Position numbers and translations under genes: made by a program
NCBI GenBank assembly: GCA_051294905.1
Contig: CM119375.1
Location: forward strand, 992,001 to 1,056,000
DNA length: 64,000 nt
From: Botryllus schlosseri
Taxonomy: Eukaryota
Reading direction: 5' to 3'
Shown: piece by piece, positions 1,459-46,300 of the stretch
Position numbering within the stretch: the stretch's first letter is position 1
Layout: the number at the start of each line of letters is the position of its first letter
The notes under the pieces: model-generated
Database searches by the model: none
What the model was told of the DNA's origin: nothing
What the model saw: the letters and a program-made list of their open reading frames with translations, nothing else

Positions 1459-4400
1459 CCGAGTTGTGATGCGACTTTGGCGCATTTCCGGACAGCGTCC
1501 AATCTCTGGCTGTAATCTCCGTCTAGGATGTTTGATGATCCTTCCAGGGACGGCAAAGAGTCGTTCCAAACGTACGACCAGCATCCCAAGTCCATCAAAT
1601 GGAAATAATCAATTGCCGCTGCTGGAAATGCGATCACGATGAGTGACAGGAAGACGCTATAGGGCTTAGCACAATCATTAGATTACTCGAATCTGAATCG
1701 AGTAGTAATTCTAAAGATTCGAGTCAAGTACTGGAATTATGAGCCTCTTGCCACGAACAGTTTTATATCATCAACGAAAATTATCGTTTCCACTGTAGAA
1801 GCCTTGAAACAGCGATTGGTTATATTCAATTCAATTCAATTTATTGCTACAATTTTCATCATTTCAGTACACCACAAGACTGCGATACAATGAAAGATAG
1901 GAAGGTGTCGACCCGACTTGGAGTAGTCATAGGACGCATTTAGTACAGATTAAGCTACGCACGTTATTGCATTGAGATGACATTTCTGTGAAGTCGTGAT
2001 CAATCCGCAACATTTTGACAAAATGCAACGAAATTACCATGCATGGTAGAAAACACCAAATTATATTCAGTGTGATGTAGAACTACCAGTGTACGCGAAT
2101 ACTCGATCCGAAGCCCAATACTCGATTCAGAATCGAATCATTCGAGCACTCTACTGTGCCTAGCCAGCCGCAATCAACTCACGTCGTGGATTCGGAACTT
2201 TTCGCAAAGTTTCGCGATTTCTCGGCTCGGTCACGACTTGAGATTCTCTTCTGTGCTGAATCGTGACTCTCGGCCTGGCAGTCCAAGATAAAGTTCGCCT
2301 TACCACAACCGGGTCCACTATCCATGGCAGAGTGCTTGCCGGTGTGGTTGCGATCGTAGTTGTAGAGCTAGTTGTGCTTGGCTCGGGTGATGTAGTTGAT
2401 GATGTAGGCAGAGGTGGAGGCGGGAATCCTAAAGAAGGAAAATCCAGTCACTCTATAGTTTGCGAAACTTGAGAAAGAAAGAGAATATTTATTTGTCAAC
2501 CGTACTTATTCAATTACACATCAAAAATCAATTCGGTGAAATGCGATACACAGAAAAGCAAGGTATGAACGGAAAGATCGATATAACAGGATTCCTCAAA
2601 GTCAAGCCATCCACGACGGGTGCATCATATAATACAGAACTCGTTTCCCTAACCACTTTTAGTTTAACTAAATGTAAAAATAAAAAATGAAAATGGAACA
2701 GAAAAAAAACATAAATAAATAAGAAATTAAATGATAAAAATAAGGGTCATTAAGTCCGAAATGTTATGATCGTTAAATCTTACTTGTGTCTGAATATCGA
2801 ATCTCATAAACTTGTATTGACGATGCAGTGCCCTTTCCCGTATGACTGCACAATGGCTTTCGTCTGGTGGCTATGGCAACAGCCTCGATGTCGTCCACGA
2901 CCATGCATTTTCCACCATCCAACATAGCCATCGTTCGATAGCTAATGTAGCGCATAGCAATTAATAAACACGCATTTTAGACTGAATCACAAGTAATCAA
3001 CTAGGAGACTAAATTCATAAAGAAAGGGTATAGGTGGTCCGTGAAAACAAGACCTACACTTCAGAATTCGGAAACCCCGTGTTAGGGGAGCTGACAAATC
3101 TCTGACAAATCCCACCCTGAATCAGCGACTCCCTTGGCACATTTCGTGATGGCGTTCGTCCTGCTCCTGTAATGTCCGTCCAATTCATCCAGCAAGCCTT
3201 CCATGGATCGGACCCCCCTGGGGGGTAAACTCCAACACCCGATGTCGCTCAGTACGAACTCTGCAACGGGTTAAATATCAGTTCAGATTATGAGAATGAG
3301 AATCGTTATTGGTCAGCCGTACAAATCGATAGCATATATACACAGCAAAATAAAATTCTATGAAATGCAATACGCAAATATGCAAGGTAACGCTCGGCAA
3401 CTGAGTTATCAACGACCGAGGAAGGAACAATAACATCTCACCGTGGGTGCCTCCAGTCGCGTCATCCGTTCTGGGAGTGACTTGGTCCTCGAAAATGAAC
3501 GAAGGTCGCAAGTTTGAAGGTCCTCGAGAGATGTGAGCTGGAGCGACATCGATCGAAATTAGTATTCGCAACCGCAAACAGTATAGTTTCAGTTTATCAG
3601 TAAATGGTATTATCCCTTCAAAAACACCACAAGATTGCGAAACAATTAAAAGCTGGGAAAGTGTCGAAACGAATTGGAGTATAGTCTATGAAATCAACAG
3701 TGTTGGGATGACTCGAGTCACATTTTTCGTATGACTTGACTTGACCCGAGTCACTTTGCAAAAATTACTAAATTTGTCTTGACTACACGCTTCAAAAATG
3801 TAGATTGACTCGTGACTCGCAGCAAAACTAACGAGTCAATCAGAGTCGTCAAGTAATCGGTATCGATAAAAATCGCTGTATCTTTCATATGTTCGGATTA
3901 TTCTCGACCTGACTTGACATGAATTCTGACTTGACTCGTTACTGGCTTGACTTGACTCGACCCGACTCGACTTGACTCGACTTGACTCGACTTGACTCGA
4001 CTTGACTCGACTTGACTCGACGTGGCTCGACTTGACTCGACTTGACTCGACTTGACTCGACTTGACTCGACTTGACTCGAGTCACCTCCAAATTTCGAGT
4101 GACTGGACTTGCTTCGAGTCACAGTACAATGACTCGAGATGACTCGAAAGTAGTGGCTTGATCCCAACACTGGAAATCAGGCACCCGCCTTTGTCTAGCA
4201 CAGTGGCTCTGGTTTTCAAAATTAATTAGACACGCCCCCTTTTATGATAGTGAAAAATTTCGCGCCTCCCTTATCGTCACAGAATGCAACCAGAATGCTA
4301 GCAATCCCAGCGGATAGTTTGATGTCATGGATGGTTATGATTGGTCATGAGAGAATTCTCAAACATGAAATTCGGACATACACAGAGCTAAAAAAACATA

Positions 4401-19357: not shown

Positions 19358-22300
19358 TCAGGACAACTCAAAACCCGACTGACTCTGCAAACAATACAGT
19401 AACTTTGCTTTCAACGTTTCCGCGTCCGTGTATTCGGGTAGCTTGAGTAGGTTGACGCAAGTAGAAGCGGAAGGTAGGCGGTCCTCATCTCCGCCACGCT
19501 GGATGCAAAAGGGAGGGTCCAACTCCTATTGAAAGAATAATACGAAATCAACCATTACCTAAACTCAACTGCATGCTCAAGTGTCGCCAGGAGTGGAGCG
19601 TTTGGTTTGCGTTTGCTGCCAAGGTGTTCCTGGACAATTATGTACTTATGCGGATATTATAGCTCTCTGGACTGCCTACTACCATGCTTTGACATCACAA
19701 AAATTACCCAACACCGATATTTCATTCAAAATATAACATCTACCCATATTATCTAGTTGTGATGTTGAAAACTTCAAGTATAAAACAAACCTTGAACCCG
19801 AGTAGTGGGGGTCGCGAACAGCTCGTCACAAACAAGAGAAATTGACTCAATTGTTCGTTGCTCAACTGCGGCAGAACTTCCCAGAACGCGACGATCGTAG
19901 GATGGTCGGCCGCGTAGCCCGCTGAAAAGGAGTGTGAGAGAGTATCTTTATTTGTCAACTGCACCAATCAATAACATACATAGCAAAAATGCAGTTGGTT
20001 GAGATGCGATATACAGAAGTGGGCCGATTTTTTTACCTAGAATACGGAAGATTTTGAACTAAAAAATCAAAATTTTGACATTTTGTGACCTTAAAAATCG
20101 TAATTTTGACGCATGCAAATTAGAGGTGTTTTACCCACATAATCTTAAAATTGTACTATTTCTCTTCATTTCTGGTTGGAGCTGTCTGTCCTTAGTAGTT
20201 TGGCCTGACAAAAACACTTTTTTGCCTCAAAAACCGACAAATTTTTACATGAAAAAAACTTCATTTTAACAAAATCTGGCCCTACGAAAAATTCCAGTAG
20301 TAGAAATATATAAAAATTTGTACTACAACGAAAGATAATTTCCTACATTCTCGTGTAGAAAGTGTCTGTCCTTGCTAAGTAGCTTGCCAAGAATGGAGAA
20401 AGAACGTTCAACAGCATCAGTTGCTGGCTGACAACACTGAAGTTGTGCGTGCACTGCTGGTGGCACACCGTGTTGCTTCATTCTGGCAATGGTGTCTGCA
20501 TCACAATTTTTCATCATGCCCTTCTTGATATAAGAACTGCCCACGCAGTCTTGCTTGAGTTAAGATATTGCGGTACGTTGAGCATAACACCATGTCAACC
20601 TATTCGTTTATTTGTATATTTATAATTCACAATGAGCAGACAATGGGCCGTCTACTAACGATAGGTCTATGAAGTAGGCTACATTCTGTAAAATGTCAAA
20701 TGGTAAGTTCACAGACAGTGCAAAATCTACGAAACAAACGAAATGCAGGTTGCGAAAAAGTTTGAACTTTGTGAAAATTTTTGATATTTTTTGACCTAAC
20801 GCTACCATTTTGACCTAATTTTAACTTTTTTTTGACATGTCAAAAAAAAAATCGCCCTTCAGATGTGCAAGGTATGGACAGGAGGCTCGGTATAGCAGAG
20901 TCGTCAAAGATGAGCAACACAGGCCAGGAGAATTCAAACTTTACATCAAACCAACAAATACACAAATGTAGTAAAAATACGCAGCATGATGGAAAATAAT
21001 CAGAAATTAATGAATAAAATAACGTCTATGGCAGACTTGCGCAAACTACCGGAACTAAAACTACTCCCTGTTCAAAACCCGCAAAGAAAACTAGAACCAA
21101 CTACTTTTAAAATGCGTAACTAAAACACAAACAACTAGATTCAATTTTGCAGTAAGTCGTTCATTGTTAGTTTATCAGCATTTCGAATGGGAGTAGTTTC
21201 AACGAGCTAGCAATGGCCGGAAGAACATCACACAACAGAACACTGGTATCATAATTCACGCCAAACGAAAACCCGCATTTTCTACATGTTTGGCAACTAA
21301 ATTTTTGTATGAAATGGACAATTAGAACTAGAACTCTACTCACTTTTTAAAATCCGCAACTAGAGCTACAACTACAACCACTCAAAAATCAAGAAGTTAG
21401 CTTGGCCCTAAGATCGTCAACTAGCTAGATTGTAAAAGTCTGGTCTATGGTCATTCGGCCAATGCAAATACAATTGAGCGGTAGTTTGAGAGCGGAGGGT
21501 AAAATATGATGAGTCTTACCAGAATACATCGTGTTTGACTTCAAGTCTGCCATGTCGATGGGAACTTCCGCTCCCGCTATCAAAGTCTGGATTTCTTCGT
21601 GGTCGAACATTTGCAACCAGTCTACGTTAACCACATCTTCTAGGCCCTGTCGGAAATGATAGCACGGCGACCTCATCTGTACGTTAAGCTTGTAGTTCGC
21701 CATCAAATGCATGTACCTGTAAAGGGTGTGAATATGATTTCATTCAGGAAGGGAAAACTTCCCAGAGGTCGGACAACTAGAAAGTTTTCAACTTATCTAA
21801 ATTAGATCAGAATCACAGTGACTGAATCTACAGAAACTTGCTAGTTCAAGTAAATCCAAAGTTAAGGAGAAATGCAACAAAAATAGAGTTCATATCATGT
21901 AAGAATTCACTATGACAAATAGAGCAAATTTTGACACGTCAAAAAAAGTCAAAATTGTAGAGTCAGGTTAAAAAAATCAAAATTGTTTCCGAAGTCAAAA
22001 TTTTTCTGCAACCTCCATTTCGTTTGTATCGCAGATTTTGCACTGTCGGTGTCATTTGACATTTTACGGCAACATATTTCAATTATTCCTACCATAATAC
22101 GTGATGTAACTACTGGAATTCTTCATAGGGCCAGATTTTGTTTGAATTGAGTTTTTTCATGCAAAATTTGTCAGCATTTGAGTCAAAAAAGTTTTTTCAG
22201 GCTAAACTACTCCGACAGGGCAGACAGTTGCAACCAGAAATGAAGATAAGTAGTACAACTCTAACATTAGGTGAGAAAACACCTAATTTGCATACGTTAG

Positions 22301-25300
22301 GTGAAAATTTGGTCGAAATTTTAATTTTTTAGGTCAAAATCTTTCTTTTTTTACGTAAAAAAAAATTGCTCCAATCATAAGCATGAGAATCGCAAATATC
22401 TGTACAACAAGCTTGACTCGTTCGGCATGATACAATCCTTCTGTAGCAGTTAGATTGGAACAACAATGATACTTACACGGATATTTTTCAAATTCAATTA
22501 GAAACAGAATCAATGAATACACAACAACTTGCAAATTGAACGAAATCACAAATTGTTAAAAAATACCACAAAATTCAAGTTCACTTCATATCAAATCAGA
22601 GTTGATTCTGACAAGAATGAGAATTACAAACGTCTGTGGACCAAGCTTGGCTCGTTTCGCACGATACGCTTCTACCAGGGTTGTGATGACTCGACTCGAG
22701 TCCGACTCGAGTCACGATTTCCTGATGACTCGAGTCATTTTCTAATAATACGGAAATGACTCGACTCGAGTCCATCTGTGTATTGGCTCGACTTGGACTC
22801 GAGTCATCTCACATGACTCGAACCAAGTCATATGACTCGAGACTCAGACGGCCAAGATCAACATTTCATTGTAATTTCGAAGAATAGTAAAGTAACCACA
22901 CTATTGGGATTTCGTCTATTGGTACTGGTACTAGAAAATGCGACCAGAAACAGCTAAAAGTGAGGGAAATTAGATATTTTAAATGCGAACCATTCGATAT
23001 CACCAAACAGAGTTAGAAAAAGTGGTTTTAACAAGGCTTTAACTGGAAACTGAGCAGTCAACACGATCACTTGGACTCGACTCGAGTCATAATACCATGA
23101 CTCGGACTTGACCCTCTGCTCAATGACTTGGATTTGAGTGAAAATTTCATGAAAACAAAAAATGAGATTAGACTGAAAATGAGAAACATCTCACAAGTTA
23201 GATTTAAATGACTGACATTCTGCTACAATTAGTTTAATTATACAGTTAGAATTATCTAGCTTAAGTCTGCAAACAGCCGTCCTACATGTCTTTATTCCTG
23301 TTGGTGACCGAAATGTTCTTTCCGTTCTGGACCAGTTCCGTCACCCTGGTCACACCCAGCGCCTCGTCAACCACGGTGAAATTGAGGCCCAAATCCGAGA
23401 CATCGCCCTCGTAATCATGAAGGTACATCAGGTTCCTGGAAATGAGGACATTTAACAAGAGTAGGGGGGTCAAGAGCGTCAAACTAGTCAGTGTAGGGAC
23501 AAGGTAATTTTCTACTCGAGAGTAAAAGTTGCGAACTCCAAGATATGTCAAAACTATGTCAAGTAGAAGTAGAAAATGTGAAAAGTACCCGAGTGGTTGG
23601 GTTCAAAAAGTATGTTCGCATACTTTTCGAAGTTACTCACCAGTAGGGCAAGTTTTTGCAACTTTTTTTTACAGCTTTCGTGAGCTTCCTAAATACTCAG
23701 CAGTTATGCAGTATGGTGCTGTAAGCTGTTTGGAGGAACCCCAAAAACTTTCCCTACTGTTACTGTTACTGTGATGACAAATTCCACGCTCAATATTCTG
23801 TTACACAACGAAGAATATACTGACATCGAAATAATCCCATATATTTTCCACCTTTCATAATCTAAAGTGTGAAAAGTCAGTAGTTTTTTCTAAAGATTGT
23901 CGAGTAGATCTGGAATCTCAGTTTAACATCATAACCAGCCAAGTATGCACCGCACAAAGTCACAAGCTACTCGAGTATTTAAGAAAAGCACAAGTATTTC
24001 TGGCGATCGCAGGCTTGACCCTCACTTGTAAAAGTCCGGATCGAGAGACTGTAAATGGTTGATGTCGACATCTGCGGACTTTCTCTGCAAAATCTTGCAA
24101 AGGAAGAACGAAGCGAACGGCAGTTCCACTTGCATACCCTCATCTATTATCTGAAAAGAATGCTCGCATTGAACAGACGATTTTGTCACCAGCAAACCAA
24201 AGACGAGCACGGATTTCGATTTGTATTTGAAAAAATTGAAGGATTTGATGATTTTGGTTGGATTATGGATTCACAATCATTTTGAAGTTGAAATTGGATT
24301 TAGTTACAAAATTCCTGATACTTTTCAATTTTGATGGGAATTTCGTGCAAATTTTGGCAATTATCAGATTTAGACATGGATTAAGACACAAGACAAAATT
24401 AAATTCTAGATGCGGGTATTAATTCTAATGTAATTTCTGGTTTTCCTGAAGTTTTCTTGCAGGACAAATGTATCGTTCGAAACGAGCCAAGCTTGGCGTA
24501 CAGACATTTGCCGTTCTTTAAATCTAATAATTTAAATGTAATTTTATAGCTGAAAATTCTTTAGTTTTTAAACTCTGATATGTTCATCACATTCCGCCAA
24601 ATTGGATTTTCCCATATTTACATTAATTTGCACGGTTGACAAATGCAGATTCCCAATCTCTCGCATGAGATTTCGTCAAAATCAAAGTCTCACCTTTCCC
24701 AACATCCTCCCCAGAAAGAAAAAATGCCGGTCCGCGTCCTGCATGACCAGCGCCGCATGGGGATTCGGATAAAGCCTCCCTTGCGCCGTAGACTTGAAAA
24801 TGCCCCTCGTGGGGTTGAACCCGGCCTTGATTACTTGCTGCATAAACTCCCGCGTCACCCCGGCCCCGTAGCCGACCTCGTCGAGACCCATGGCGTTCAC
24901 AAACTGGACGCGAAGACGCTTTCGTAGGTTGGGAGCTGAGATGAGAAAAGTTAGACTTAGAATTACAGTAAGGTAGACAGATTTTCCGAATTATATTGGA
25001 AACAAAATGATAGCTATACAGGTTTTTGTTTCAGAATTAGATTAGAATTAGAGCTATAGCTACAGTTATTTTTTCCAAACTAGATTACAATTGGAGTCAT
25101 AGTACGCTACCAATTGTTTTACAAATTTGATTGGAAATAAAATGATATCCAAAGCTGCAATACATTGTAGAAAAAAAATGCAAAATACCGTTTTCCTGAG
25201 ACAAGTCGTTGAAAGCGTCTTCATAGAGAAATTCTCGTCGAACTTTGACCTCGTTGGTCATGGTCGAAGAAGCAAGCCCCGCCTCCACTATGGCTCGTTG

Positions 25301-28300
25301 ACGAGAGCTCTCGCGACCCGAACGTTCTTTCTGGAGCATCGTCTGAGAGAAATCGGTTTGATTTTACAGTTTTCTGTATTATCTGTGATTTACCTGCTCG
25401 AGTCGCAGACTATTATGAACCGAGTAATGAAAATAGAGGAAATTACTAATTATACATGCAATGTATTGCTCATATAAGGGGAATTGTAGATGTATAGCAT
25501 AGCCTCAGTGTATTATGTAATACTAATTGAATATTATATTGATTTTGAAATAAACCCAGGTATTTTCGACCAAGGTGCGGTAATATTAAGGGCTAACTAG
25601 TCTTCATTAGTCAACAACTAGTAGAGAATTGGATAGACATTGTATATCAACAATCTCATCACAAAATATGACTTCATTTCGAATACTCGAGACGAAGAGA
25701 TCATCCTATATCATATTCAACGTTAGGGTTACCATTTTGGACAACAGGAAAGGTAGACTCTTTTCACATGCGGCAAAAGTTGCTACAGATGACAGAAAAT
25801 GGCCGACTGTTATATTTATAGAGCTTATTTTGTTAGGTTGACTAAAAAAAGGGTTATTTTACCCGACTGGACTCCCGAAATACCGGTTTTAACCTTACGT
25901 TATCAGAGTTGACTGCAAAAAGAAGGTCATTTTTCAAACTCAACTCTAGCTTTTCCCGTAAATCCTACTCTTTTTGGGCATTTTAGGCTAAAAAGGAGGA
26001 CAAATTTCTTGAGAAGGAAGAAAAAATCCTCCTAAAAGAGGCCGTACGGTCACCATATTAAACATGAATATAACATTCAATTGTTTTTTGAAATCCTGTA
26101 CCTTGAAGACGCTCTTCAAGTAACAATAATGATTAGTCGAAATAGTGGATGGAATACGAAACCTCATATGTTGAAACAAATTGAAGTAATACACAACCAA
26201 CACACACATACAGAAGACATAATTAAAGCCTGCAAGCAATAGTTAACAAGTGACATAGGCATATATACGCCACCACGGATTAAACGCTAAAAGCATGTAA
26301 ACCTTGACCAACTATATTTCGAAACTGTTCAGTTGCGGCAGACCTGTCTTAGATATTGCTATCTCAGCTTGTAATCGAGTAGATGTTACACCGTTATTTC
26401 CACAGGAATATTGTTACCAAGAATGGTTACTTCGACCAAAAATGTCACTCACTCACTCACCGTGAATATCGATACTCTTGCGTCAAACGGAACCACAAAC
26501 GGCATGTTTATGAGGACTGCTAGCTGTCGCGCTTCATTCACCGATAAAACAATGTCTTCGTCCGACGAATCTGAGAGAATGCCCGAGTATCGCTCATTAT
26601 TACATCAAGAGAGTATGAATGATGTGGGAAGCAACTATCTACCCTTTATGGGAGCACAAAGAATATAATTCCAGTTCTAAATCACATTGAAGATGATTTT
26701 GTACTTTTGCAAACATGCCTATTTCAAACCAAATATGGATCGATTCCTACCTGCAGACGCAAAGCTATTGGAGTTATAAAATTGGTTGCATAACAAATTT
26801 GGCTCAATTTCAACCAGTAGAAGCGAAAGTTAGTTATTGGTGTTCAAAATTTTGGATTCGAAATAATAGTATTTCCGGTGGGTGGTTCTACAATTACTAG
26901 TCGAAGAATTTCTCACGTAACTGATATGAACCGAGCCTGAGCTTTGTTGCATTTCTTTCTATGTTAAAATTAAATTAAATTTCCAGGTTGCTGCGCATTC
27001 AGTAATTCTGTTTCTGAACTATTTGGAAGAAAATTGTGTAGCTATCATTCTTATTCTAATCTAATTAGGAAAAAAAGCTGTGTAGCTATCATTCTAATTG
27101 GAATTTTTCAAACTTTTGTATTTTGTTATTTTTGAACAACCTTTTTTATATAGCAGGGTTGCAATGACTCGAGTCACTTGAACTCAAGTCATTGCGTATA
27201 AACTCGAGACTCAGACGGCCAAGACCGACATTTCATTGTAATTTCGAAGACTAGTAAAGTAACCACACTATTGGGATTTCGTCTATTGGCATTGGTACTT
27301 GAAAACGTGACCAGAAACTGCTAAAAGTGAGGAAAATTAGTATATTATAAATGCGAACCATTCGATATCATCAAACAGAGTTATCAAAAGTGGGATTAAC
27401 AAGACTTTAACTGGAAACTGAGCAGTCACCACGATGACTTGGACTCAAGTCATAATATCATGATTCGGACTCGATTCTCCGCGCACTGACTTGGACTCGG
27501 ACTTAACTCAGCGGTGAATTGAAAATGACTCGATTTGACTCGAGTCAAAACTACAAAGGTGAGATTGACTTGTGACTTGTGTTAACCAAACAAGTTGAAA
27601 ATACCCACTGGCAAGATGGGCCGCCACAGAATTCTCATTCCCCGATCTGCGGTACCAACGGTTGGCCAGATCGTTCGATTGCGCGATCACAATGGAATTG
27701 GAGAGCCAGGAACCTTTCGCGATGAAGGCCCTTCGAGAATCTCTCGTGTGCAAATGTTTGACCAGCCTTCGACAAGTCTGAAAAATTCAAATTAAGAGTC
27801 ATTGAATTAACGAAAAGAATTACACGAAACAGTATCTAGATATTGCTTCTAGGAATTAGATTAGAAATAGAATTACTTAATAATTTATTACATTCTGAAT
27901 TAGAAGTAAGACGAGTTATGTTAGAAAATGATTAGAAATGAAAACAAGAGCAAAAAAAGAGCATTTAGTGAACAAATCAACGTAATTTGCGTGATTCCAA
28001 ACTTATGTAATCTGAAAGCCTTGTTTAAAAAGAGAGAGAAGCTTACCCTGAAAAGATGAATGAATTTGTTTCTTATGTCGAGCTCCTCCTTACTGCTATC
28101 ATCGGACTTGACCGGATGTCCAGTCGACAAAGCTTTCAACGCAGACCTTAAACGCGACAAACAATTTTCGCAATACCAGACATGGCGTGATCGTGATTTG
28201 TAATCATTACCAATTCATCGAATTTGCTAACGATTAATTTATATATATATATTCGATTTCTTTGTGAAAGGGTAAAATCTAGGCTCTTTAGCCTTTAAAA

Positions 28301-34300: not shown

Positions 34301-37300
34301 TTGAATACCGTAGTTTCAAATATTACAATCACTAGTCACTACTGTATGTTTTATCGTTATGACTAAACAAGGTTTGCTAACATTAGTTACCCTGGGGGAT
34401 CATTTTCATTGCCAATTTTTCCAATACAGTGTTCGAAAACCCTATCGTGATTAAAAGGTCAAACCTACAGCATGTTATTTTCAGATATTCCAAGGAAACT
34501 CCGATCAGACAACGAAGGTAATCGGATGGTTCCCCGAGCCTGTGACTTGTCGTTACGTGCGTCTCTACCCACAGACCTGGCATACTTTTATGTGTCTTCG
34601 AATGGACGTAGTTAAAGCTAATTGTCCTTGAAAATGGAGCCTGAGTTGGTTTCATTTCTTTCAAATACGAAAATACATTGATTTCTGCAAATTAAGTAGC
34701 TTTCTGTGTTGATTTTACCAGATCAAATGTATGTAAACAGTACAAGCATGAGGTTGCATAAAAGCTGTCCCTGTCACCATAGTAACTAAAAACAAGTGTC
34801 ACTGAAAATATGTACCTCACACTTGCGGGCAAACGCCAGGGTATTTAACAAGTCACAAGTCAATTCAACAACTTAGAGTTTTGACTCAAGTCAAGTCGAG
34901 TTATTTAGAAATCACCACCGAGTCAACCCCGAGTCCAAGTCAGGGAGCAGAGGGTCGAGTCTCCAAGTCACTGTACAGTAGGGTTGTTCAAAAATAACTT
35001 CTTTTCCAGATTCCGGGGATTCACTGATTAAATTGCTTGGTTGGCAAAAAAACGCCGTACGTCAAATTTCACTTGATTTCAACTAGCAGATGCGAACGCA
35101 CAGGAGTTTGAAAATTTTGAATTAATTTTGAAAAAATCAAGACATAAATTTTCAAATTTTTTTGTCAATCCCATGGAATTGTCAAGTTGTCTACAAAAAC
35201 GAAATAAAACAAATTTGACGCAATTCCAATCTGTAGAAGCGAAGTTATTTGTGTTATTCATTAGGCCTATTAATTATGGAATAACCCACCGTCCAGGTCA
35301 ATTTCCGCGAACCAAAAATTTGTAACTGCAATAACTTCGCTTCTACTAGTTGAAAGTGAGCAAAAATTCTTAAGCATCGTTCTTTTAGACAACTTGATAA
35401 TTTCATGGGGTTGACAGTAAAATTTGAAAAATTATTTTATGATTTTTTTTAATTCAAAACTCCTGTGCATTCTACATCTACCAGATGAAATCGAGTCCAA
35501 TTTGGTGTGTAGCGTTTTTTTAGGCAACCTAACAATTTAATCAGTGAATCCCCAGAATCCGGAAAAAGAAGTCATTTTTGAACAACCCTACTGTACAGTT
35601 CCCAGAGTGTAGGCTCGACAGTAGAGTAATTTCCAGGTTACTAGCGTCGAAATGCTACCGCAGGCCCAATTGAAGATGTAAACGCGGGACAAAGTATCAT
35701 TTGGTCATAGCAAGGTGACGAAATTTGCCACTGTAGATACTATAATTTACAAAAATGGTGAAAATTTCAAATTGTCATAGCTCTGGTGTTACTGGCTGAA
35801 ATCGACTCAAATTTTGTGTGCAGTCGCTTTTTTTTTATAAAACTTAACTATATTTTCAACTATCCAGCGAAATTTGAAAAAAAAAAATGGTAATATTGAA
35901 CAATTCTAGCGGCCATATTCAAGTCCATATTCGGCAACGACTGAAATCCGATCAAACGCGGTATGAGTATGAGACGTTACAATATCAGTTCCAAATCCAG
36001 CTTCAAAATAATCTTAAATTCAGATCCGATAAAAATCTGGGAAAAATCATCAAATTTGCTTAGTTCAAATCCAAACCCATGTTCGTCTCTGTATCAATTA
36101 CATTATGGATTTTGATTTGGACTTGGATTTGAAAATACTAAATCCGCTCATCCCTGCTACCAACCCGAGTAGAAGTCCGTGTCCGGAACCGCCAACAGAT
36201 TGAGATTGAAAAGCGCGCAGAACACGACCAGTTTCGAACGGACAGACGACGTTTCGCTCGAATTCATCGAGCGTCCTTCTATGAGCAGCTGCACGAGAGG
36301 TACACTGCCAACCGAGAGAGAGAGAGATTCTGTTTTCGTCAACCGTGCTTATCAATACCATACAAACAAAAATAGGTTGAATGTGATATGTTAAGTATGG
36401 TGTAGATCAGCGGTTCTCAACCTTTTGTACCTCATGGACAGGCGAACCTTCAAAAATCTCACTTTATTTAAAGCTGCTATTCTGATATTAGATATTTATT
36501 AATGGTTATATTGCAGATTCTGGAGGGCAAAGCTTGCGAAGACCCGTTAGAAACTACCAACTTCATTGCGTTTATTCGGTATTCTTTGAAAGAGATGGGA
36601 CTTTGCTATGATCCCTATTATATCCTACCGACAAGTGCCCCCAATTGTACTTGACTCTCCTAACTTTAACTTATAACTTACGTGAAACGAATACTTTTGA
36701 ACAGTCTATGGAGACGCCACACAAAAGATATTATCCAAACTTCAAAATCAGTTTGAAATTTGATGTTTTATTTCTCGAATTAATGGATAACGGTCAAACT
36801 TCTTGCAATCTGGAATTGAAATATAAAATTCCAATATAATCGGCGACCAACAGGAAACTTGCTACGGACCAGCAGTTAAGATCTAATGGTATAGTTCAAA
36901 ATTGGGCAAATAATTAATCCTAGCTGTCGAATTAGAATAATTAGAGCAAAATGCCGTTAATCTAATTCTAATCTAATTTCTGACATGCTTCTACGCACTC
37001 ATTTAATTATAATCTAATTGTGAAAAGCTGAAAATTTTCCATTTGTCAAAATATGACATCTACCATCTAAAAATAGCACATTGAACGGTCTCTTATTCGA
37101 ATTTCATGCTGGCGATGTCATATTTTGGTGATACGATCGTTGATATGCGATGTTCTTTCCAGTCATTAACTAATTGCTGACGATTACCCCTGACGAGTGT
37201 CAGCCGAAAATATTCAGGTTCATTTAAATATCAATAAACTATGCCAGAGTTTTGAGGATAAATCATCCATTTAGCTTTTTATCACCCATTGACCGACTGA

Positions 37301-40300
37301 AATCGCAGCTAAACTTACCTTTTTCCCGTGATTCCGCTCTTGGTGCATAAAGTCATCAACGAATTCCACAGTTGACGCAGGAATGTCGCAGAGAACGCCA
37401 AAGTGCGTAGTAACCTAAAGTATTGCTTTTGTTAACACGAGCACAAGGTTACCAGCCAATTCAGCACTTGGCGAACACCAATCCTAACCCACTCCTACCC
37501 TAGCCCCTGAGGCCCTGACTAGGGCTGAGTGCTTCTATTCTGAATCGCATATTAGGCCTTGAGACAAGTATTAATCATTATGACGCCACATAATAGGGTG
37601 GAGTGAAAAATGGAAAATTTTGAATTTTAAAACGGACACTTGATATGTGGTGCCAAATTTAAAAAAAATAATTTCTATAATAATTTTGGGCTCGTGCACC
37701 CTCTAGTGGTCGTGCAATTGCACCGAACGAGCCAAAAATAGCTAATTTTGCTATATATTGACGACCGCTTCCTCTAGAAAGCTGATTTTGGCCTCAAAAG
37801 ATGCGGAAGCAACAAGTTTCTATCTCACTTCCACAGAACTTTGTCTTAAAAATGAACAGAAAAAAAGTTACGAGGAAATTATTGATTTTTAGACCATTTT
37901 TCAGTAAAATTAGGCACTGAAGCAGGGTACGAGGCCAAAAGCGTGTAGTGATCGATCTTATGACTGACAACTCCATATTGGAAACACATAAATTGTTAAT
38001 TCATATTGAAAACACAAAACCATCAATTCCATATTGAAAAAGATATATTTCGAAGATGATTTCACTACCAGAGTATCAGTCTGCACAAACTTTGAAATCT
38101 TGTTTTGTATTAAAAGATTTCATCTGTTTTTGAGACTTCAGTTTTTCTCTGATTAAGTCATCTCTACGTTTAAATCCCGACACATGGGCAGATGCTTTGG
38201 TCACCACTTTAACGTCTCTTTCCACTGCCTGGTTGTGCCAAGGATGTTTGAGGAGATGACCTTAGATTTTCCATCTCGAGATATGGTGAGTTTTTGATTG
38301 CTGGTGGCTGTTCCATATCTTTTAGATTCAAGTTGACAATTTAGTGGTATGATTTGGCCTTGATGTTTATAATTGGGATTTTAAACAATCTGATTCTAGT
38401 GTCAATGTTGTTTTTAGGTTTCGTTTCATTAACATATCCTCCTTCAAAGTCATTAATTGGAATCTGGTATTCTGTTTGATCTGCTCATAGTTGTAATCTT
38501 GCAAGTCTTCCGAGGCCTTCATCATCATCGCCGAGCATTCCCAAAAGACATTATCCGGATGTGCAAAATATGCTTTTCCTTGTAGCAAAGGTAATGCAAG
38601 GTTGCGAATTCGTGTATCAGAAATCTTTGTAATATGGGAAACTATGTTGCAGAAGTTTTTAGCACCATCAACAATGGAATTGTGCCTTTTTTTTTCAAAC
38701 CATGACGGAAAATAAAACTCCATGCAGAATTAAGCAAGATAGTTCAGATTGCTTGATGGATGACTCTGTCGCACATGTATGCTATCATTGCTATGTATAG
38801 AACCTCAAAAAATCAGGAAATCTGAACTATCTTACTCAATTCTGCATGGAGGTTTATTTTCCGTCATGGTTTGAAATAAAAAGGTACAATTATGGATGAC
38901 TCAGTCCCACATAGAACATGCCGAATTTTTAGTTTCTATGTGCGACAAAGTCATCCATCAAGCAATCTGAGCTATCTTGCTCAATTCTGCATTGAGGTTT
39001 ATTTTCCGTCATGGTTTGAAATAAAAAGGCACAATTCCATTGTTGATGGTGCTAAAAACTTCTGCAACAGTTTCCCATGTTACAAAAGCTTTCTAATACA
39101 CAATTCGTAACCTTGCACTATCTTTGCTACAACAAAAGGCATGTTTTGCACATCTGTGAATGCTCGGTGATGATGATGAAGGCCTCAGAAGACTTGCAAG
39201 TCTATAACTATGAGCAGATCAAACAGAATATCAGATTCCAATCGGCGACTTAGAAGGAGGATGTGTTAATGAACCGAAACCTAAAAACAGCGTTGACACT
39301 AGAATCAGATTGTTCAAAATCCCAATTATAAGCATCAAGGCCAACACCAAATTGTCAACTTGCATCTAAAAGATGCGGAACATCCACCAGCAATCAAAAG
39401 CTTTTCATATCTTGAGCAGAAAAATCTAAGGTCATCACCATTAAGGATCAATCATCCTTGGCACAACCAGGAAGTGGAAAGAGACGTTAAAGTGGTGACC
39501 GAAGCATATGCCCATTGCTCATGTGTCGGGATTTGAATGTAGTGATGGCCTCATCACACAAAGACTGAAATCTCGAAAGCAGATGAAATCCTTTATTACG
39601 AAACAAGATTTTAAAGTTTGTGCATACTAATACTCTGGAAGTGAATCCATCTTCGAAATATATCTTTTTTCGATATAGAATTGATGTTTTTGTGTTTTCA
39701 ATATGGATTTGCAATTTATGTGCTTTTAATATGGAGTTGTCAGTCATAAGATCAATCACTACAAGCTTTTGGCATCATAGCCACTGCTTCAGTGCCTAAT
39801 TTTACCTAAAAACATCCTAAAAATCAATAATTTGCTTGTAACTTTTTTTCTGTCCATTTTTAAGACAAAAGTTCTGTGGAAGTGAGATAGAAACTTGTTG
39901 CTTCCGCATCTTTTAAGAACAAAATCAGCTTTCTAGCATAAGCGGTAATCAATATATAGCGAAATTAGCTATTTTTGGCTCGTTCGGTGCAATTGCACGA
40001 CCACTAGAGGGTGCACGAGCCCAAAATTATTATAGAAATTATTTTTTTTAAATTTGGCACCACATATCAAGTGTCCGTTTTGAAATTCAAAATTTTCCAT
40101 TTTTCACTCCACCCTAGCCACATAACATGAACAGCGTGGAAAGTTTAAATACGGTATGCATCTTCCATGCAACCACAAAGAGTAAAATTGCCAGTTTTAC
40201 AGCATATTGGAGATAATTTGGTATTTTTTTCGATCATACCCATTTCCTTGTACTGTGTGACAAAGTCATTTCCACTGGATTTATTTACAGAAAAAAACGA

Positions 40301-43300: not shown

Positions 43301-46300
43301 GAGTAGAGCCAATTTGTGTGTTGACGCTACTTGTACTCGAGTCATTGTGCAGTGCATGACCCGAACCAAGTCACATGACTCGAGACTAGGACGGCCAAGA
43401 CAGACAATATGTAATTTCGAAGAATAGTTAAGTCACCACATTATGGTATTTCATGGAAAATAGGGCCAGAAACTGTTAGGACTGAGGAAAATTACAATAT
43501 TATGAATGTGAGCCACTCTATATTACTCTAGCAGTGTTGAAAAAAGCGGATTAAACCGAATTGAACTCAAAATTGAAGAGTGAACACTATGACTTGGACT
43601 CGAGTCACAACACTATGATTCGGACTCGACCCTCTACTCACTGACTTGGACTTGACTCGGTGGTGCATTGAAAATGACTCGATTTGACTTGAGTCAAAAC
43701 TATAAATTGAGATTGACTTGTGACTCGGAACCTTGCGACTTGGTTACAACCCTGGTTGGATGCATAGTAGCCTACAGTATACAATTGTATACCATTTTCA
43801 TATTGAAATAAACCTAGCTATTTTCGTCTGACACTCATCAGGAGCAACTAGTAGAGAATTCTAATGTTGTATAGCAAAATCCATCATCCTAGTTTGTGTA
43901 TTATCCAAAATAGTACATTGATACTACAATGTGTTTAACTGTAAGCCATCTGTTCGCCTTAAGTATTACAATTTTCACGCATATGTCATATTTTGAGATA
44001 CGGTTGTTGATGTACAATGTTCTTTTCAATTCTCTACTAGTTGCTGACGATTGCCCCTGACGAGTGTCAGCCAAAAATATTATTCAATTGCTATTGTATT
44101 AGCCATTCGCTTCCATCTTTCAACATTTACCTCCAATATTTGTGGCAAGAGTAATTGGACGGACAAGTAAACTGAGCAGAGTTTCAGCGAGTGGAGTCGG
44201 GGCTCTGACGTGGTCAAATTGCGGTTCGAGATCAAATGGCACTCTCGTAGAGAGAAGGTTTAAAATGCCTTTGAAGTAACCTGCAGAGAAAGAGAGAGAG
44301 TCGTTATTTTCATCATACCGAAATACAGATCAAACAGAAGGCAACAATGATAACACATGCACCGTGGGGCTGTTCGAAAATAACATTTTTTTTAAATTTT
44401 CCGAATACTTCATAAAATTACTCAATTGCACCCCATAGAGGTGGTGTAGTAATTGGAGGAAAAAAAATCTTTGGATTTGAAAAACAGCATTATTAATTAT
44501 AAAACTACTCACCGAAAATGCCGAATCTATACCCGATATTTCTAAGCTAGTTTGAAATTCAGCAATTCGTATTACATGTTTCGGAATTCAATCTCGTTAG
44601 TTGTATTTTAGTTAGTCAGTCGTGGATCTTTGAAGGTCGTTAGTTCTCGCTAGAGATTTGAAAAGCGAGTAGCTGTAGTTGTGAGTTTTGAAAAGTAACG
44701 ACCGGTAATTTTAGTTTTAGTTGACTATTTTGGAAGCAGAGTAGTTCTAGTCATGAGTTTTGAAAAGTGACTAATTCTAGTTCTTGTTGCGTATTTTGAA
44801 AAGTGAGTAGTTGTAGGTTGTAGTTGTGAGTTTTGAAAAGTAACTACCGGTAATTCCAGTTCTAGTCGAGTATTTTGAAAAATGAGTAGTTCTAGTTGGG
44901 TGTTTTGAAAAGTGAGTAGTTCTGGTTCTAGTTTTGAGTTTTAAAAAGTGACTAATCCAAGTTCTAGTTAGTTATTTTGAAATTCCACTAGTTTGTACAA
45001 GTCTGAGGTTTAGAAACAACTTGATCACAAACTCACCGATATCAATCAAATCATTCCACATTTTCAAAACGGAAGACCTGACGTCATCTTCCTTGTAATG
45101 GTGAGCTTTCTTCAACAGCTCAAGATCGGTGAGCGTTTCAACGATACGAAGCGGTATTGTAATATTAGACTCAGAGCCTGCCGATCCAATGCTCCTATAT
45201 AGAGAAAAAAATCAATAATCCAAGCGAGTAATTTCATAATCAAGTCCCGAAGTTACTTGCAAGACAGTTGTAAAACCTTCAAGGTCGCAGAGAGATTTTT
45301 ATCATCGCTGGAAATCCATTTTGTCTTCTCCTTGATGAGCTTTTTCCCAAACCAAATCTAGAAAATGAAAGTGTCCGAATATGACCAAACAGGTAGACTT
45401 TGAAAACAAAATAATTCCAGATGTCCAATCAGACTTATTAGAGCCAAATGCTGATAATCTAATTCTAATTTAATTTATGTAATGTTTCTTTACTCTCATT
45501 TCAATTCTAATCTAATTTCTGGTTTTCCTGAAAATGCTACAAGAGAACTGTACAGTACAAATCGAGCCAAGCTTGGTGTACGGACATTTGCCATTTTTGT
45601 GCTTATGATAACTTTGATTAGGCTCATATGAACTGGACTTTAAATTCGGAATTTAAATTAAATTTGCAAGTTCCGTAATTCTGAATTCTAATCTAATTTG
45701 GAAAAAACTGTGTAGCTACAATTCAAAATTAACTCTGGTTTGATATGAACTGAACTTCCAATTGCAATTGGAATTCTGAGTCTAATCTAATTTAATTTAG
45801 GATAACTGTGTAGCAGAGATGAGCGGATTTGAATTTTCTATGTCCTAATCCAATCCAAATCCAACACTTCAAATCCTACTCAAAGTGCTAATCCAGAAAT
45901 TTTGTATACATCAAGCCTAATCCTGATCCTAATCCGATATAAACTTGGAATTTCTCGTAAAAAGCCCACATCTTATGCCTATAATTAGGTAAAAAGAATA
46001 AAACGCAACAAGTGCTAAAGTAAATGAAGTAACTTTGGTAGGACGAAAAACCTCGTCGCCATCAGCCACAGAACATCAATCTCCCCAAATATCGGTTAAT
46101 CCAATCCTAATCCATTGCAACATCTAAAATCCTGATCGAATCCAAATCCGACAAAATTTCACAAATCCGGTTTTACCAAATGCTAATCCATGCTCGTGCT
46201 CATCCCTGCTGTGAAGCTATAATTCTAATTGCATTTTAACTTGAAGTTGAAAAATTTCGTGTAGTCAAACTCGGAAATAGGCATTGAAATAAAGCATCAC

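Follow-up and report, generated by a model that had tools for sequence, protein, structure and literature searches.

Here we surveyed and analyzed a palindromic transposable element of Botryllus schlosseri, which lies at positions 37594-40116 of a 64,000-nucleotide stretch of contig CM119375.1 (assembly GCA_051294905.1); this whole stretch is called the window. The element is 2,523 bp long and has TAGGGTG...CACCCTA termini, its 5′ end being TAGGGTGGAG and its 3′ end CTCCACCCTA. It is flanked by the target-site duplication (TSD) GCCACATAA, which is 9/9 identical at 37585-37593 and 40117-40125, and the perfect 9-bp TSD claimed in a preliminary description of this DNA is thus present. The element is very probably one insertion of a non-autonomous foldback member of the hATm group, built as a palindrome of 3′ ends, spread through the genome as a unit and located here in an intron of a UBE3C-like gene.

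Structure of the element

The chain of inverted-repeat blocks given by a repeat finder covers 37594-38776 and 38938-40116. After the right half had been reverse-complemented and globally aligned with the left half, 90.4% of the aligned bases were identical and 19 indels were counted, which agrees with the difference of roughly 10-15% estimated by eye for the inner arms in the preliminary description; the BLAST identity of arm against arm, gaps counted, was 87.5%, and the outermost 249 nt of the two arms are 96% identical. Each arm of about 1.2 kb is composed of a terminal repeat of about 300 bp, about 180 bp of 3′-specific non-coding sequence and about 700 bp of frameshifted coding remnant. 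The open reading frames (ORFs) which persist in these remnants lie at 38367-38723, 38209-38331 and 38076-38225 in the left arm and at 38892-39110, 39077-39253, 39360-39536 and 39508-39630 in the right arm. All parts are listed in Table 1.

Table 1. Parts of the palindromic element and the nearest candidate host exons, in window coordinates (L032, a near-complete relative of the element; L031, a more distant one)
Feature	Position	Strand	Basis
Left target-site duplication GCCACATAA	37585..37593	.	identical 9/9 to 40117-40125
Outer left arm, also the terminal inverted repeat in autonomous relatives; starts TAGGGTGGAGTGAAAA	37594..37895	-	arm 1-302 aligns with either end of the L032 element
Left arm, 3′-specific non-coding subterminal region	37896..38075	-	matches the 3′ side only of the L032 element
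Left-arm broken coding remnant, last ~235 transposase residues, read toward the left terminus	38076..38803	-	tblastn: P0002 residues 520-755, L031 ORF, L032 C-terminal ORF; frames -3/-2/-3
First 15-nt centre-loop copy, remnant	38804..38810	.	31-bp deletion in the window's subfamily; alignment of 26 copies
Third, partial copy of the inner arm end, right-arm orientation	38811..38891	+	equals L032-element 2352-2426
26-nt inverted piece, which pairs with the beginning of the right arm in a small stem	38892..38917	-	inverted repeat and centre dissection
Second 15-nt loop copy ATGCCGAATTTTTAG, inverted relative to the first	38918..38932	+	native parent-gene sequence, equals L032-element 2308-2322
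Right-arm broken coding remnant, last ~235 residues, read toward the right terminus	38933..39612	+	tblastn, frames +1/+2/+1/+2
Right-arm 3′ non-coding subterminal region and terminal repeat, ending CTCCACCCTA	39613..40116	+	inverted-repeat and L032-element comparisons
Right target-site duplication GCCACATAA	40117..40125	.	identical 9/9 to 37585-37593
Candidate host exon, downstream in gene, UBE3C-like ~residues 450-505	36166..36333	-	tblastn P0137, E 3e-4, colinear with the HECT exons
Candidate host exon, upstream in gene, UBE3C-like ~residues 200-250	44126..44287	-	tblastn P0129, E 4.5e-5

A subterminal tandem repeat of 28 bp x 2.6 was also observed at 37968-38040, with its mirror at about 39667-39740; the core is (T/C)CATATTG(A/G)AAA and the repeat is specific to the 3′ side of the parent-like element. 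These repeats may be candidate transposase-binding sites.

Genome-wide copies and target sites

The window's own assembly (495 Mb, 219 contigs, in which the window is C5:992001-1056000) was searched with the left arm as query, and dozens of places were returned in which a match of 93-98% adjoins a match of 87-89% in inverted orientation. The whole element was present in 26 of the 30 fetched loci with 92-97% identity across all 2,523 bp, giving at least 26 full-length copies genome-wide. These copies range from 2.3 to 2.56 kb in length, span 16 contigs, have different flanks at each locus and share the same centre, aside from recurrent small deletions. The window copy and 25 further full-length copies start with TAGGGTGGAG, and all of them end with CTCCACCCTA except L025, of which the right end is CTCCACTCTA.

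Exact 8-bp TSDs were found at 12 of the 26 copies, exact 9-bp TSDs at 10 and 9-bp TSDs with one mismatch at 3. The excess of 9-bp TSDs over chance-extended 8-bp ones gave p = 0.03 (10/22) to 0.003 (13/25). Both classes have the target pattern nT...An, with T at position 2 in 21/25 TSDs and A at the penultimate position in 23/25, and the hAT target consensus, nTnnnnAn, is thus followed. The window's own duplication fits the 9-bp pattern of the family, nT.....An, except for C instead of T at position 2. At one copy (L017, G000 C11:289358-291881) the right terminus is followed by an extra AG and then by the 8-bp duplication TGGACTAT, which is otherwise perfect; the two bases could be a small insertion at the junction.

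The genome was also searched with a 21-nt motif of the centre junction, which gave 95 hits against 15 for the reversed control, about 80 above background; the number of junction loci is about 60-75, since 17 loci give two motif hits each. Since their flanks are identical, three one-armed copies on contig C1 (L005, L007 and L008) go back to one segmental duplication and not to separate insertions. The immediate flank of the window copy is unique in the assembly, and no paralogous empty site exists for it there.

The preliminary description had proposed a search for other copies with the same centre and different TSDs, and had named a single-copy structure, an assembly artefact or the lack of family members sharing the junction as grounds for giving up its interpretation. 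The 26 loci with their own TSDs and the 60-75 junction loci contradict all of these. Palindromes do carry a general risk in assemblies, and a chimeric palindromic long read, or else a single rearrangement that arose in place and never moved, could by itself give such a structure at one locus. Against this, the same structure is present with different flanks and its own 8- or 9-bp TSD at no fewer than 26 loci on 16 contigs, and the arm difference of about 10% has a pattern common to all copies, whereas the arms of artefactual palindromes are identical. The probability left to an artefact or to an immobile rearrangement is negligible.

Derivation from the 3′ end of a transposon

Only one near-complete element was found for the lineage of the window family. 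It is a 3,738-bp element (L032:5340-9077; G000 C3:22280339-22284076) with the same termini and terminal repeats of about 300 bp; in transposase orientation, two ORF pieces of about 300 aa each are seen in it, at 727-1626 and 1922-2830, with a break between them. In the coordinates of this element, the window element reads as the reverse complement of 2308-3738, followed by 2323-2426, the reverse complement of 2323-2352, and 2308-3738. Both arms match its 3′-specific part (2308-3440), and its 5′-specific part (283-2306) has no match anywhere in the window element. By tblastn, residues of about 520-755 of the 755-aa homologue P0002 are found on each arm, when read from the centre to the terminus. 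The earlier observations that both arms are the same end of a transposase gene, including its broken C-terminus, and that no distinct opposite end is present are borne out by these comparisons. The break at the junction falls inside the codons of a conserved SRWLT block. An 84-aa arm ORF has more than 150 related places in the genome.

The L032 element also has a 230-bp insertion in its 3′ region, and the element is flanked by a likely TSD, which is AT-rich, 8 bp long and has one mismatch. A closer autonomous parent was looked for by a DNA search of the assembly with the L032 interior, which gave only L032 itself, fragments and the 5′-5′ family described below; a protein search led to the distant L031 lineage.

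A second, distant hATm lineage is represented by L031:5723-8934 (G000 C1:20693722-20696933) and L050:4590-7787 (G000 C110), which have the 8-bp duplications TTATCCAT and ATAGACAA and terminal repeats of about 310 bp. This lineage shares only the terminal 16 nt with the window family, which are identical to the first 16 nt of the outer left arm. The L031 element is 3,212 bp long with an 8-bp duplication and repeats that are 92.7% alike, and it has an open frame of 653 codons, of which the C-terminus (...CHNQIVERHVKLVTEASAQVSGFERRD...) aligns with the arm ORFs. This frame has GTEGT at the position of the second catalytic aspartate, where the family has CDGT. A supposed 763-aa open frame on contig C110 was rejected after an ORF scan, in which the longest ORF in L050 was of 348 aa.

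The preliminary description had further proposed that a one-ended foldback is competent for transposition. The family has indeed moved as a unit and shows that the same end present twice is enough, in cis, for transposition to take place over many rounds; the proposal becomes less radical, since the repeats of about 300 bp in the autonomous relatives are already shared by both of their ends.

Classification of the transposase

The published hallmarks of hATm elements are 5′-TAGGGTG/CACCCTA-3′ termini, TSDs of 8 or 9 bp and long terminal repeats, with lengths of 417 and 575 bp (Zhang et al. 2018, Mob DNA, PMC6004678); the supplement of the same paper includes hATm-1_AT in Amyelois transitella and mixed 8/9-bp TSDs within one Bactrocera family. 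The window family has these termini, has both TSD lengths in one family and inserts at nT...An targets, and long terminal inverted repeats are present in its autonomous relatives (about 300 bp in L032 and about 310 bp in L031).

The protein was examined through its predicted structure, since the Pfam and PDB searches were blank: Pfam searches with the arm ORFs and their relatives gave no transposase domain and reached no hAT model, and PDB sequence and profile searches with the protein family gave only spurious coiled-coil matches to TRIM25. An AlphaFold model of P0002, obtained from 23 aligned sequences, had a mean confidence score (pLDDT) of 81.6. Its top match was Hermes, with a Foldseek E of 2e-5 and probability 1.0 and a VIA-align Z of 15.2 over 338 residues, in which residues 268-747 of the model align to 136-609 of Hermes; ISCth4 (Z 11.7) and retroviral integrase cores (about 11) were clearly lower in VIA-align. 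By this match the predicted model conforms to the Hermes type of RNase H-like DDE core, split by a large insertion domain, and the candidate D/D/E residues D304, D378 and E713 are invariant or nearly so in the 23 homologues. A C-terminal motif, PCHxQAVERHVK, is by eye like the hAT motif S-x-x-x-E-R-x-F-S.

The 653-aa frame of L031 has 654 database relatives, mostly of about 740-770 aa, which have no precomputed Pfam domain; the named ones are all "hypothetical" or "uncharacterized" and come from insects, e.g. Amyelois transitella and Cacopsylla. Look-alikes in the ESM Atlas are unnamed arthropod clusters only. One homologue (P0062) comes from Amyelois transitella, a host in the list of the hATm paper, which is an indirect link between this protein family, widespread in arthropods, and the published group. 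On the predicted model, the family of about 750 aa looks like an unannotated clade of hAT transposases. The family (A1 / P0001-P0120) has hundreds of database members, apparently mostly animal, of which the few that are named or assigned to a taxon are arthropods; its N-terminal region has conserved C-x-C...C-x-C and FL-x-DQR motifs.

The element is filed under hATm by its DNA hallmarks and the Hermes-like predicted fold, with a reservation concerning the domain PF05699 which is given below. The assignment to hATm, suggested in the preliminary description, matches the published termini, TSD lengths and long repeats, and the predicted fold is consistent with it.

Formation of the palindrome and order of events

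The centre is not a simple turn-around. Besides two opposed copies of a 15-nt loop, an inverted piece of 26 nt and a third arm copy, which is partial, are found there (Table 1). The third copy, at 38811-38891, is a direct repeat of 38957-39036 (93%) and an inverted repeat of 38678-38757 (91%). The first loop copy is reduced in the window's subfamily, whereas the 26-copy alignment shows that a 2.55-kb subfamily (L018, L021, L022, L024-L027 and L030) retains the full loop, CTCAAAATTTGGCAT, and the adjoining stem. The third arm copy was recurrently lost in L012, L020, L023, L028 and L029, and about 145 bp or more were lost independently at the centre in five copies; such deletions are expected from the instability of a palindrome centre.

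When all arms were placed in one tree, left and right arms separated into two clades, reciprocally monophyletic and with mirrored internal topologies, from which it follows that the arms had diverged by the time amplification started and have been passed on jointly ever since. The order proposed earlier, with formation of the palindrome preceding its transposition as a unit, holds on this sequence evidence: the copies share the arm-specific differences and the centre and differ in their TSDs. Divergences between arm consensuses and copies were calculated as Kimura distances. The consensus of the left arms and that of the right arms are 0.070 apart overall, with 0.027 in the outer 300 nt and 0.08-0.10 in the other arm regions; the outer 300 nt have diverged significantly less (Fisher p = 0.0007). 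Such a pattern is to be expected if the arms drifted apart and transposition went on only in those lineages whose ends still worked. The copies are at a mean distance of 0.027 from their own arm consensus, the window copy is at 0.017-0.018, and the youngest pairs of copies are 0.008-0.010 apart.

The following course of events is proposed. An ancestral hATm element would have had terminal repeats of about 300 bp and a gene for a transposase of about 750 aa, ending about 480 bp from the 3′ terminus. During gap repair or replication a nascent strand would then, probably through snap-back or a template switch, have made an inverted second copy of the 3′ 1.4 kb of this element, so that two copies became joined via a 15-nt native loop inside the SRWLT codons, and a second inverted copying would then have affected the central 145 bp. 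The product would have kept both outer termini intact and lost the 5′ two-thirds entirely; with this loss the element would depend on transposase supplied in trans. Such a transposase would recognize the terminal repeats, excise the element and paste it into nT(N4-5)An sites with a staggered cut of 8 or 9 bp, and the palindrome would have spread as a unit over a long period. Self-templated copying is pointed to by the two arms being broken at the same nucleotide around the native loop and by the second inverted copy adjacent to it. A native short inverted repeat (2291-2303 with 2336-2348) was considered as the cause of the fold-back and was rejected, as the observed stem starts from 2323 and the loop is 2308-2322.

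An alternative is that two already diverged members were inserted tail to tail or nested, were fused by a deletion and were then mobilized from their outer ends like the "double Ds" of maize. In its favor, the distance between the left and the right clade in a wider tree is not smaller than that of either to the arms of related foldbacks (9-13% for every pair), and three apparently single-armed relatives (L033, L036 and L037) differ from each of the two consensuses by 6.6-9.8%, which is comparable with the 7.0% that separates the consensuses. The break of both arms at 2323 around the 15-nt native loop is, however, a symmetry which is unexpected from a random deletion. Other foldbacks (L041 and L042) share the identical junction and have arms that are star-like with those of the window family, which fits arms that were identical at birth and radiated early, and the "single-armed" relatives nest among the foldback arms and look like deletion derivatives. 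A fusion of two insertions is for these reasons considered improbable.

Some results weigh against a self-templated palindrome of the hATm group moved by a transposase in trans. There is no clear microhomology at the junction to support a simple snap-back priming. DNA and protein searches of the assembly gave no intact transposase belonging to the lineage of the window family, L032 being broken and 19-21% diverged. The hAT dimerization domain PF05699 remained unmatched, at E up to 1-10, in five ORFs (including those of L031 and L032) and in the 23 homologues, although with this Pfam model more than 150 other hAT genes are detected in the genome. PF05699 is reported for hATm-6 (PMC6004678), and in this respect the ORFs and homologues analyzed here, which match no Pfam hAT model, differ from the published group.

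Other foldbacks of the lineage

Foldbacks of the 3′-3′ type with the junction of the window family and with arms 9-12% apart were also found in L041/L043/L047 and in L042. Their arms and those of the window family form a near-star tree, for which one old palindromization followed by a quick radiation is the best explanation. The apparently one-armed L033, L036 and L037 nest among these arms and so resemble products of deletion; in L037 one arm is kept over 968 bp and the other over 132 bp. The preliminary description had seen in this element a direct route from an autonomous transposon to the shorter palindromic elements common in this DNA; a few deletion derivatives (L003, L029 and L037) are in line with such a route, and the suggestion extends as far as these copies.

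Different junctions occur in further 3′-3′ foldbacks. In L044:2158-4714 and L045:1990-4563 the junction is asymmetric, with parent position 2246 joined to 2706, and in L046:2075-4377, L048:2188-4761 and L049:1054-3936 parent position 2238 is joined to 2652. Both kinds have a single-copy coding interior of 400-460 bp and are 82-87% identical to L032, closer than the window family, and they represent at least one palindromization independent of that of the window family.

A 5′-5′ family of at least 17 copies, which includes L038:2250-5430 (G000 C9:6635749-6638929) and L039:2272-5459 (G000 C8:138871-142058), is built from two 5′ halves (parent 1-328 plus 925-2030) and has the 9-bp TSD CAAAACCAC and the 8-bp TSD GCCCCCAT. 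The arms of L038 and L039 are 95-96% alike within a copy, while the two copies are only 91% alike, which hints at homogenization or at repeated re-formation. The 5′-5′ and 3′-3′ families were considered as reciprocal products of one break, and this was rejected on account of terminal repeats only about 80% alike and different arm ages (4-5% against about 10%).

Palindromes of the same end are thus a recurrent product of this lineage. A further step, for which the evidence is suggestive but which we regard as rather less likely to be true than false, is that hATm elements make such palindromes systematically and that these have become the dominant propagating form of the lineage. The 3′-3′ junction classes, of which there are at least two (2308|2323 and 2238-2246|2652-2706), the 5′-5′ family and the fact that no intact autonomous copy of the lineage was found in the assembly are the observations on which it draws. 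If true, this would point to a mechanism tied to the replication or repair of hAT elements with long repeats; when an element is half replicated, the transposase might pair one of its ends with the sister-chromatid copy of that end, or repair synthesis might be self-primed.

Comparison with known systems

Published hATm elements are autonomous copies or short MITEs (miniature inverted-repeat transposable elements) such as hATm-NA6, whereas the present family is a 2.5-kb palindrome of two 3′ ends with about 700 bp of coding remnant. The usual MITE size criterion is below 800 bp (PMC6004678); with copies of 2.3-2.56 kb, present in tens and not thousands, the family falls outside this class, although it is non-coding insofar as it holds only broken ORF remnants.

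The nearest structural precedent is Galileo, a P-superfamily element of Drosophila, in which the end of the transposase ORF has been recruited into both inverted terminal repeats, over 69 bp in a D. willistoni copy that is nearly complete and over more than 500 bp in copy 147 (PMC4168063). Some Galileo copies consist just of two long repeats, their ends are better conserved than the rest, and template switching in gap repair was proposed; the ORF recruitment was termed unique to Galileo by its authors (PMC4168063). The two systems differ in that Galileo has a THAP/P-type transposase, TSDs of 7-8 bp, a GTATTAC-like target and other termini, whereas the present family has those of hAT, carries about 700 bp of coding sequence with no unique interior, and keeps a defined junction at its many loci. 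P element transposase ranks far below Hermes as a match to the predicted model, and the likeness to Galileo is one of functional analogy only. The window family shows that the recruitment of transposase-coding sequence into inverted arms is not confined to Galileo and occurs also, and more completely, in a hAT lineage.

In maize, which offers a comparison within the hAT group, Ds elements are said to arise from Ac by abortive gap repair and to include "double Ds" forms, reportedly in work of Rubin and Levy from 1997 and of Yan et al. from 1999. They resemble the present family in that non-autonomous derivatives come from interrupted repair synthesis with template switches, and in that inverted arrangements of ends are still substrates of the transposase. 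They differ in being mostly internal deletions that keep a 5′ and a 3′ end, or a Ds within a Ds, and not amplified palindromes of the same end. The FB elements of Drosophila have a 9-bp duplication, and like the present family they have long inverted arms with little or no unique centre. Their arms are made of tandem subrepeats and they are MuDR-like, whereas here each arm has one 28-bp x 2.6 array and the end of a transposase gene between hAT termini at a hAT target; the window family does not belong with them.

Compared with these systems, the finding is real and well supported but does not amount to a new principle. Its value lies in the fact that the origin of long-armed non-autonomous DNA transposons is mostly inferred from end products, and this family preserves together a parent-like element, the exact junction in a conserved codon block and the scar of a second template switch. 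It also keeps arm-specific substitutions, by which the formation can be dated relative to the amplification, and deletion derivatives toward shorter elements. The 3′-3′, 5′-5′ and 5′-3′ forms can be used as a natural set of substrates for testing the end requirements of hAT transposases.

Host gene and predicted hairpin

HECT-domain exons were found on the minus strand at window positions 19361-24939, with weaker colinear matches to HECT ligases of about 1,060-1,090 aa at 27691-27786, 36166-36333 and 44126-44287. The protein matched by the last of these, P0129, is named UBE3C of cuttlefish by its source. Since colinear minus-strand exon matches lie on either side of it, the element sits in an intron, and the location in UBE3C given in the preliminary description is in agreement with this. 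Elsewhere, at G000 C2:33899647-33924582, four HECT-domain genes in tandem were observed, apparently without introns, the open frames of which are 556-1,045 aa long.

When folded as RNA from either strand, the element is predicted to form a hairpin of about 1,080-1,090 arm-to-arm pairs, the minimum free energy being -1,697 to -1,747 kcal/mol, whereas three mononucleotide shuffles gave about -570; it has 12 perfect duplex runs of at least 21 bp, the longest of 120 bp. The earlier suggestion of a double-stranded hairpin of more than 1 kb directed against its own family stands as far as a predicted hairpin of about 1.1 kb is concerned. Its other part, silencing of the transposase, is unsupported: no 21-mer is common to the window copy and either the L032 transposase ORF or the L031 element. 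Many 21-mers are common to the window copy and other foldback copies, and perfect targets occur only in non-autonomous copies and terminal repeats. From this sharing pattern, any small RNAs would hit the non-autonomous relatives and neither of the transposase ORFs compared.

It is conceivable that the window copy matters mainly as a hairpin RNA locus, from which small interfering RNAs or editing substrates made in the UBE3C-like pre-mRNA restrain the family. The long fold predicted on both strands and the intronic position indicated by the exon matches would suit this role. The lack of shared 21-mers just described speaks against it, as does the fact that the window copy is not marked out from some 60 others, and we give this explanation very little weight. 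The family nevertheless adds tens of intronic and intergenic hairpin loci of kilobase scale as candidate sources of small RNAs in a chordate relative.

Upstream of the element, at window positions 37194-37260, the first 50-65 nt or so belong to a very abundant short repeat (524 candidates at first look, many of them 94-96%), which is probably the end of a MITE.

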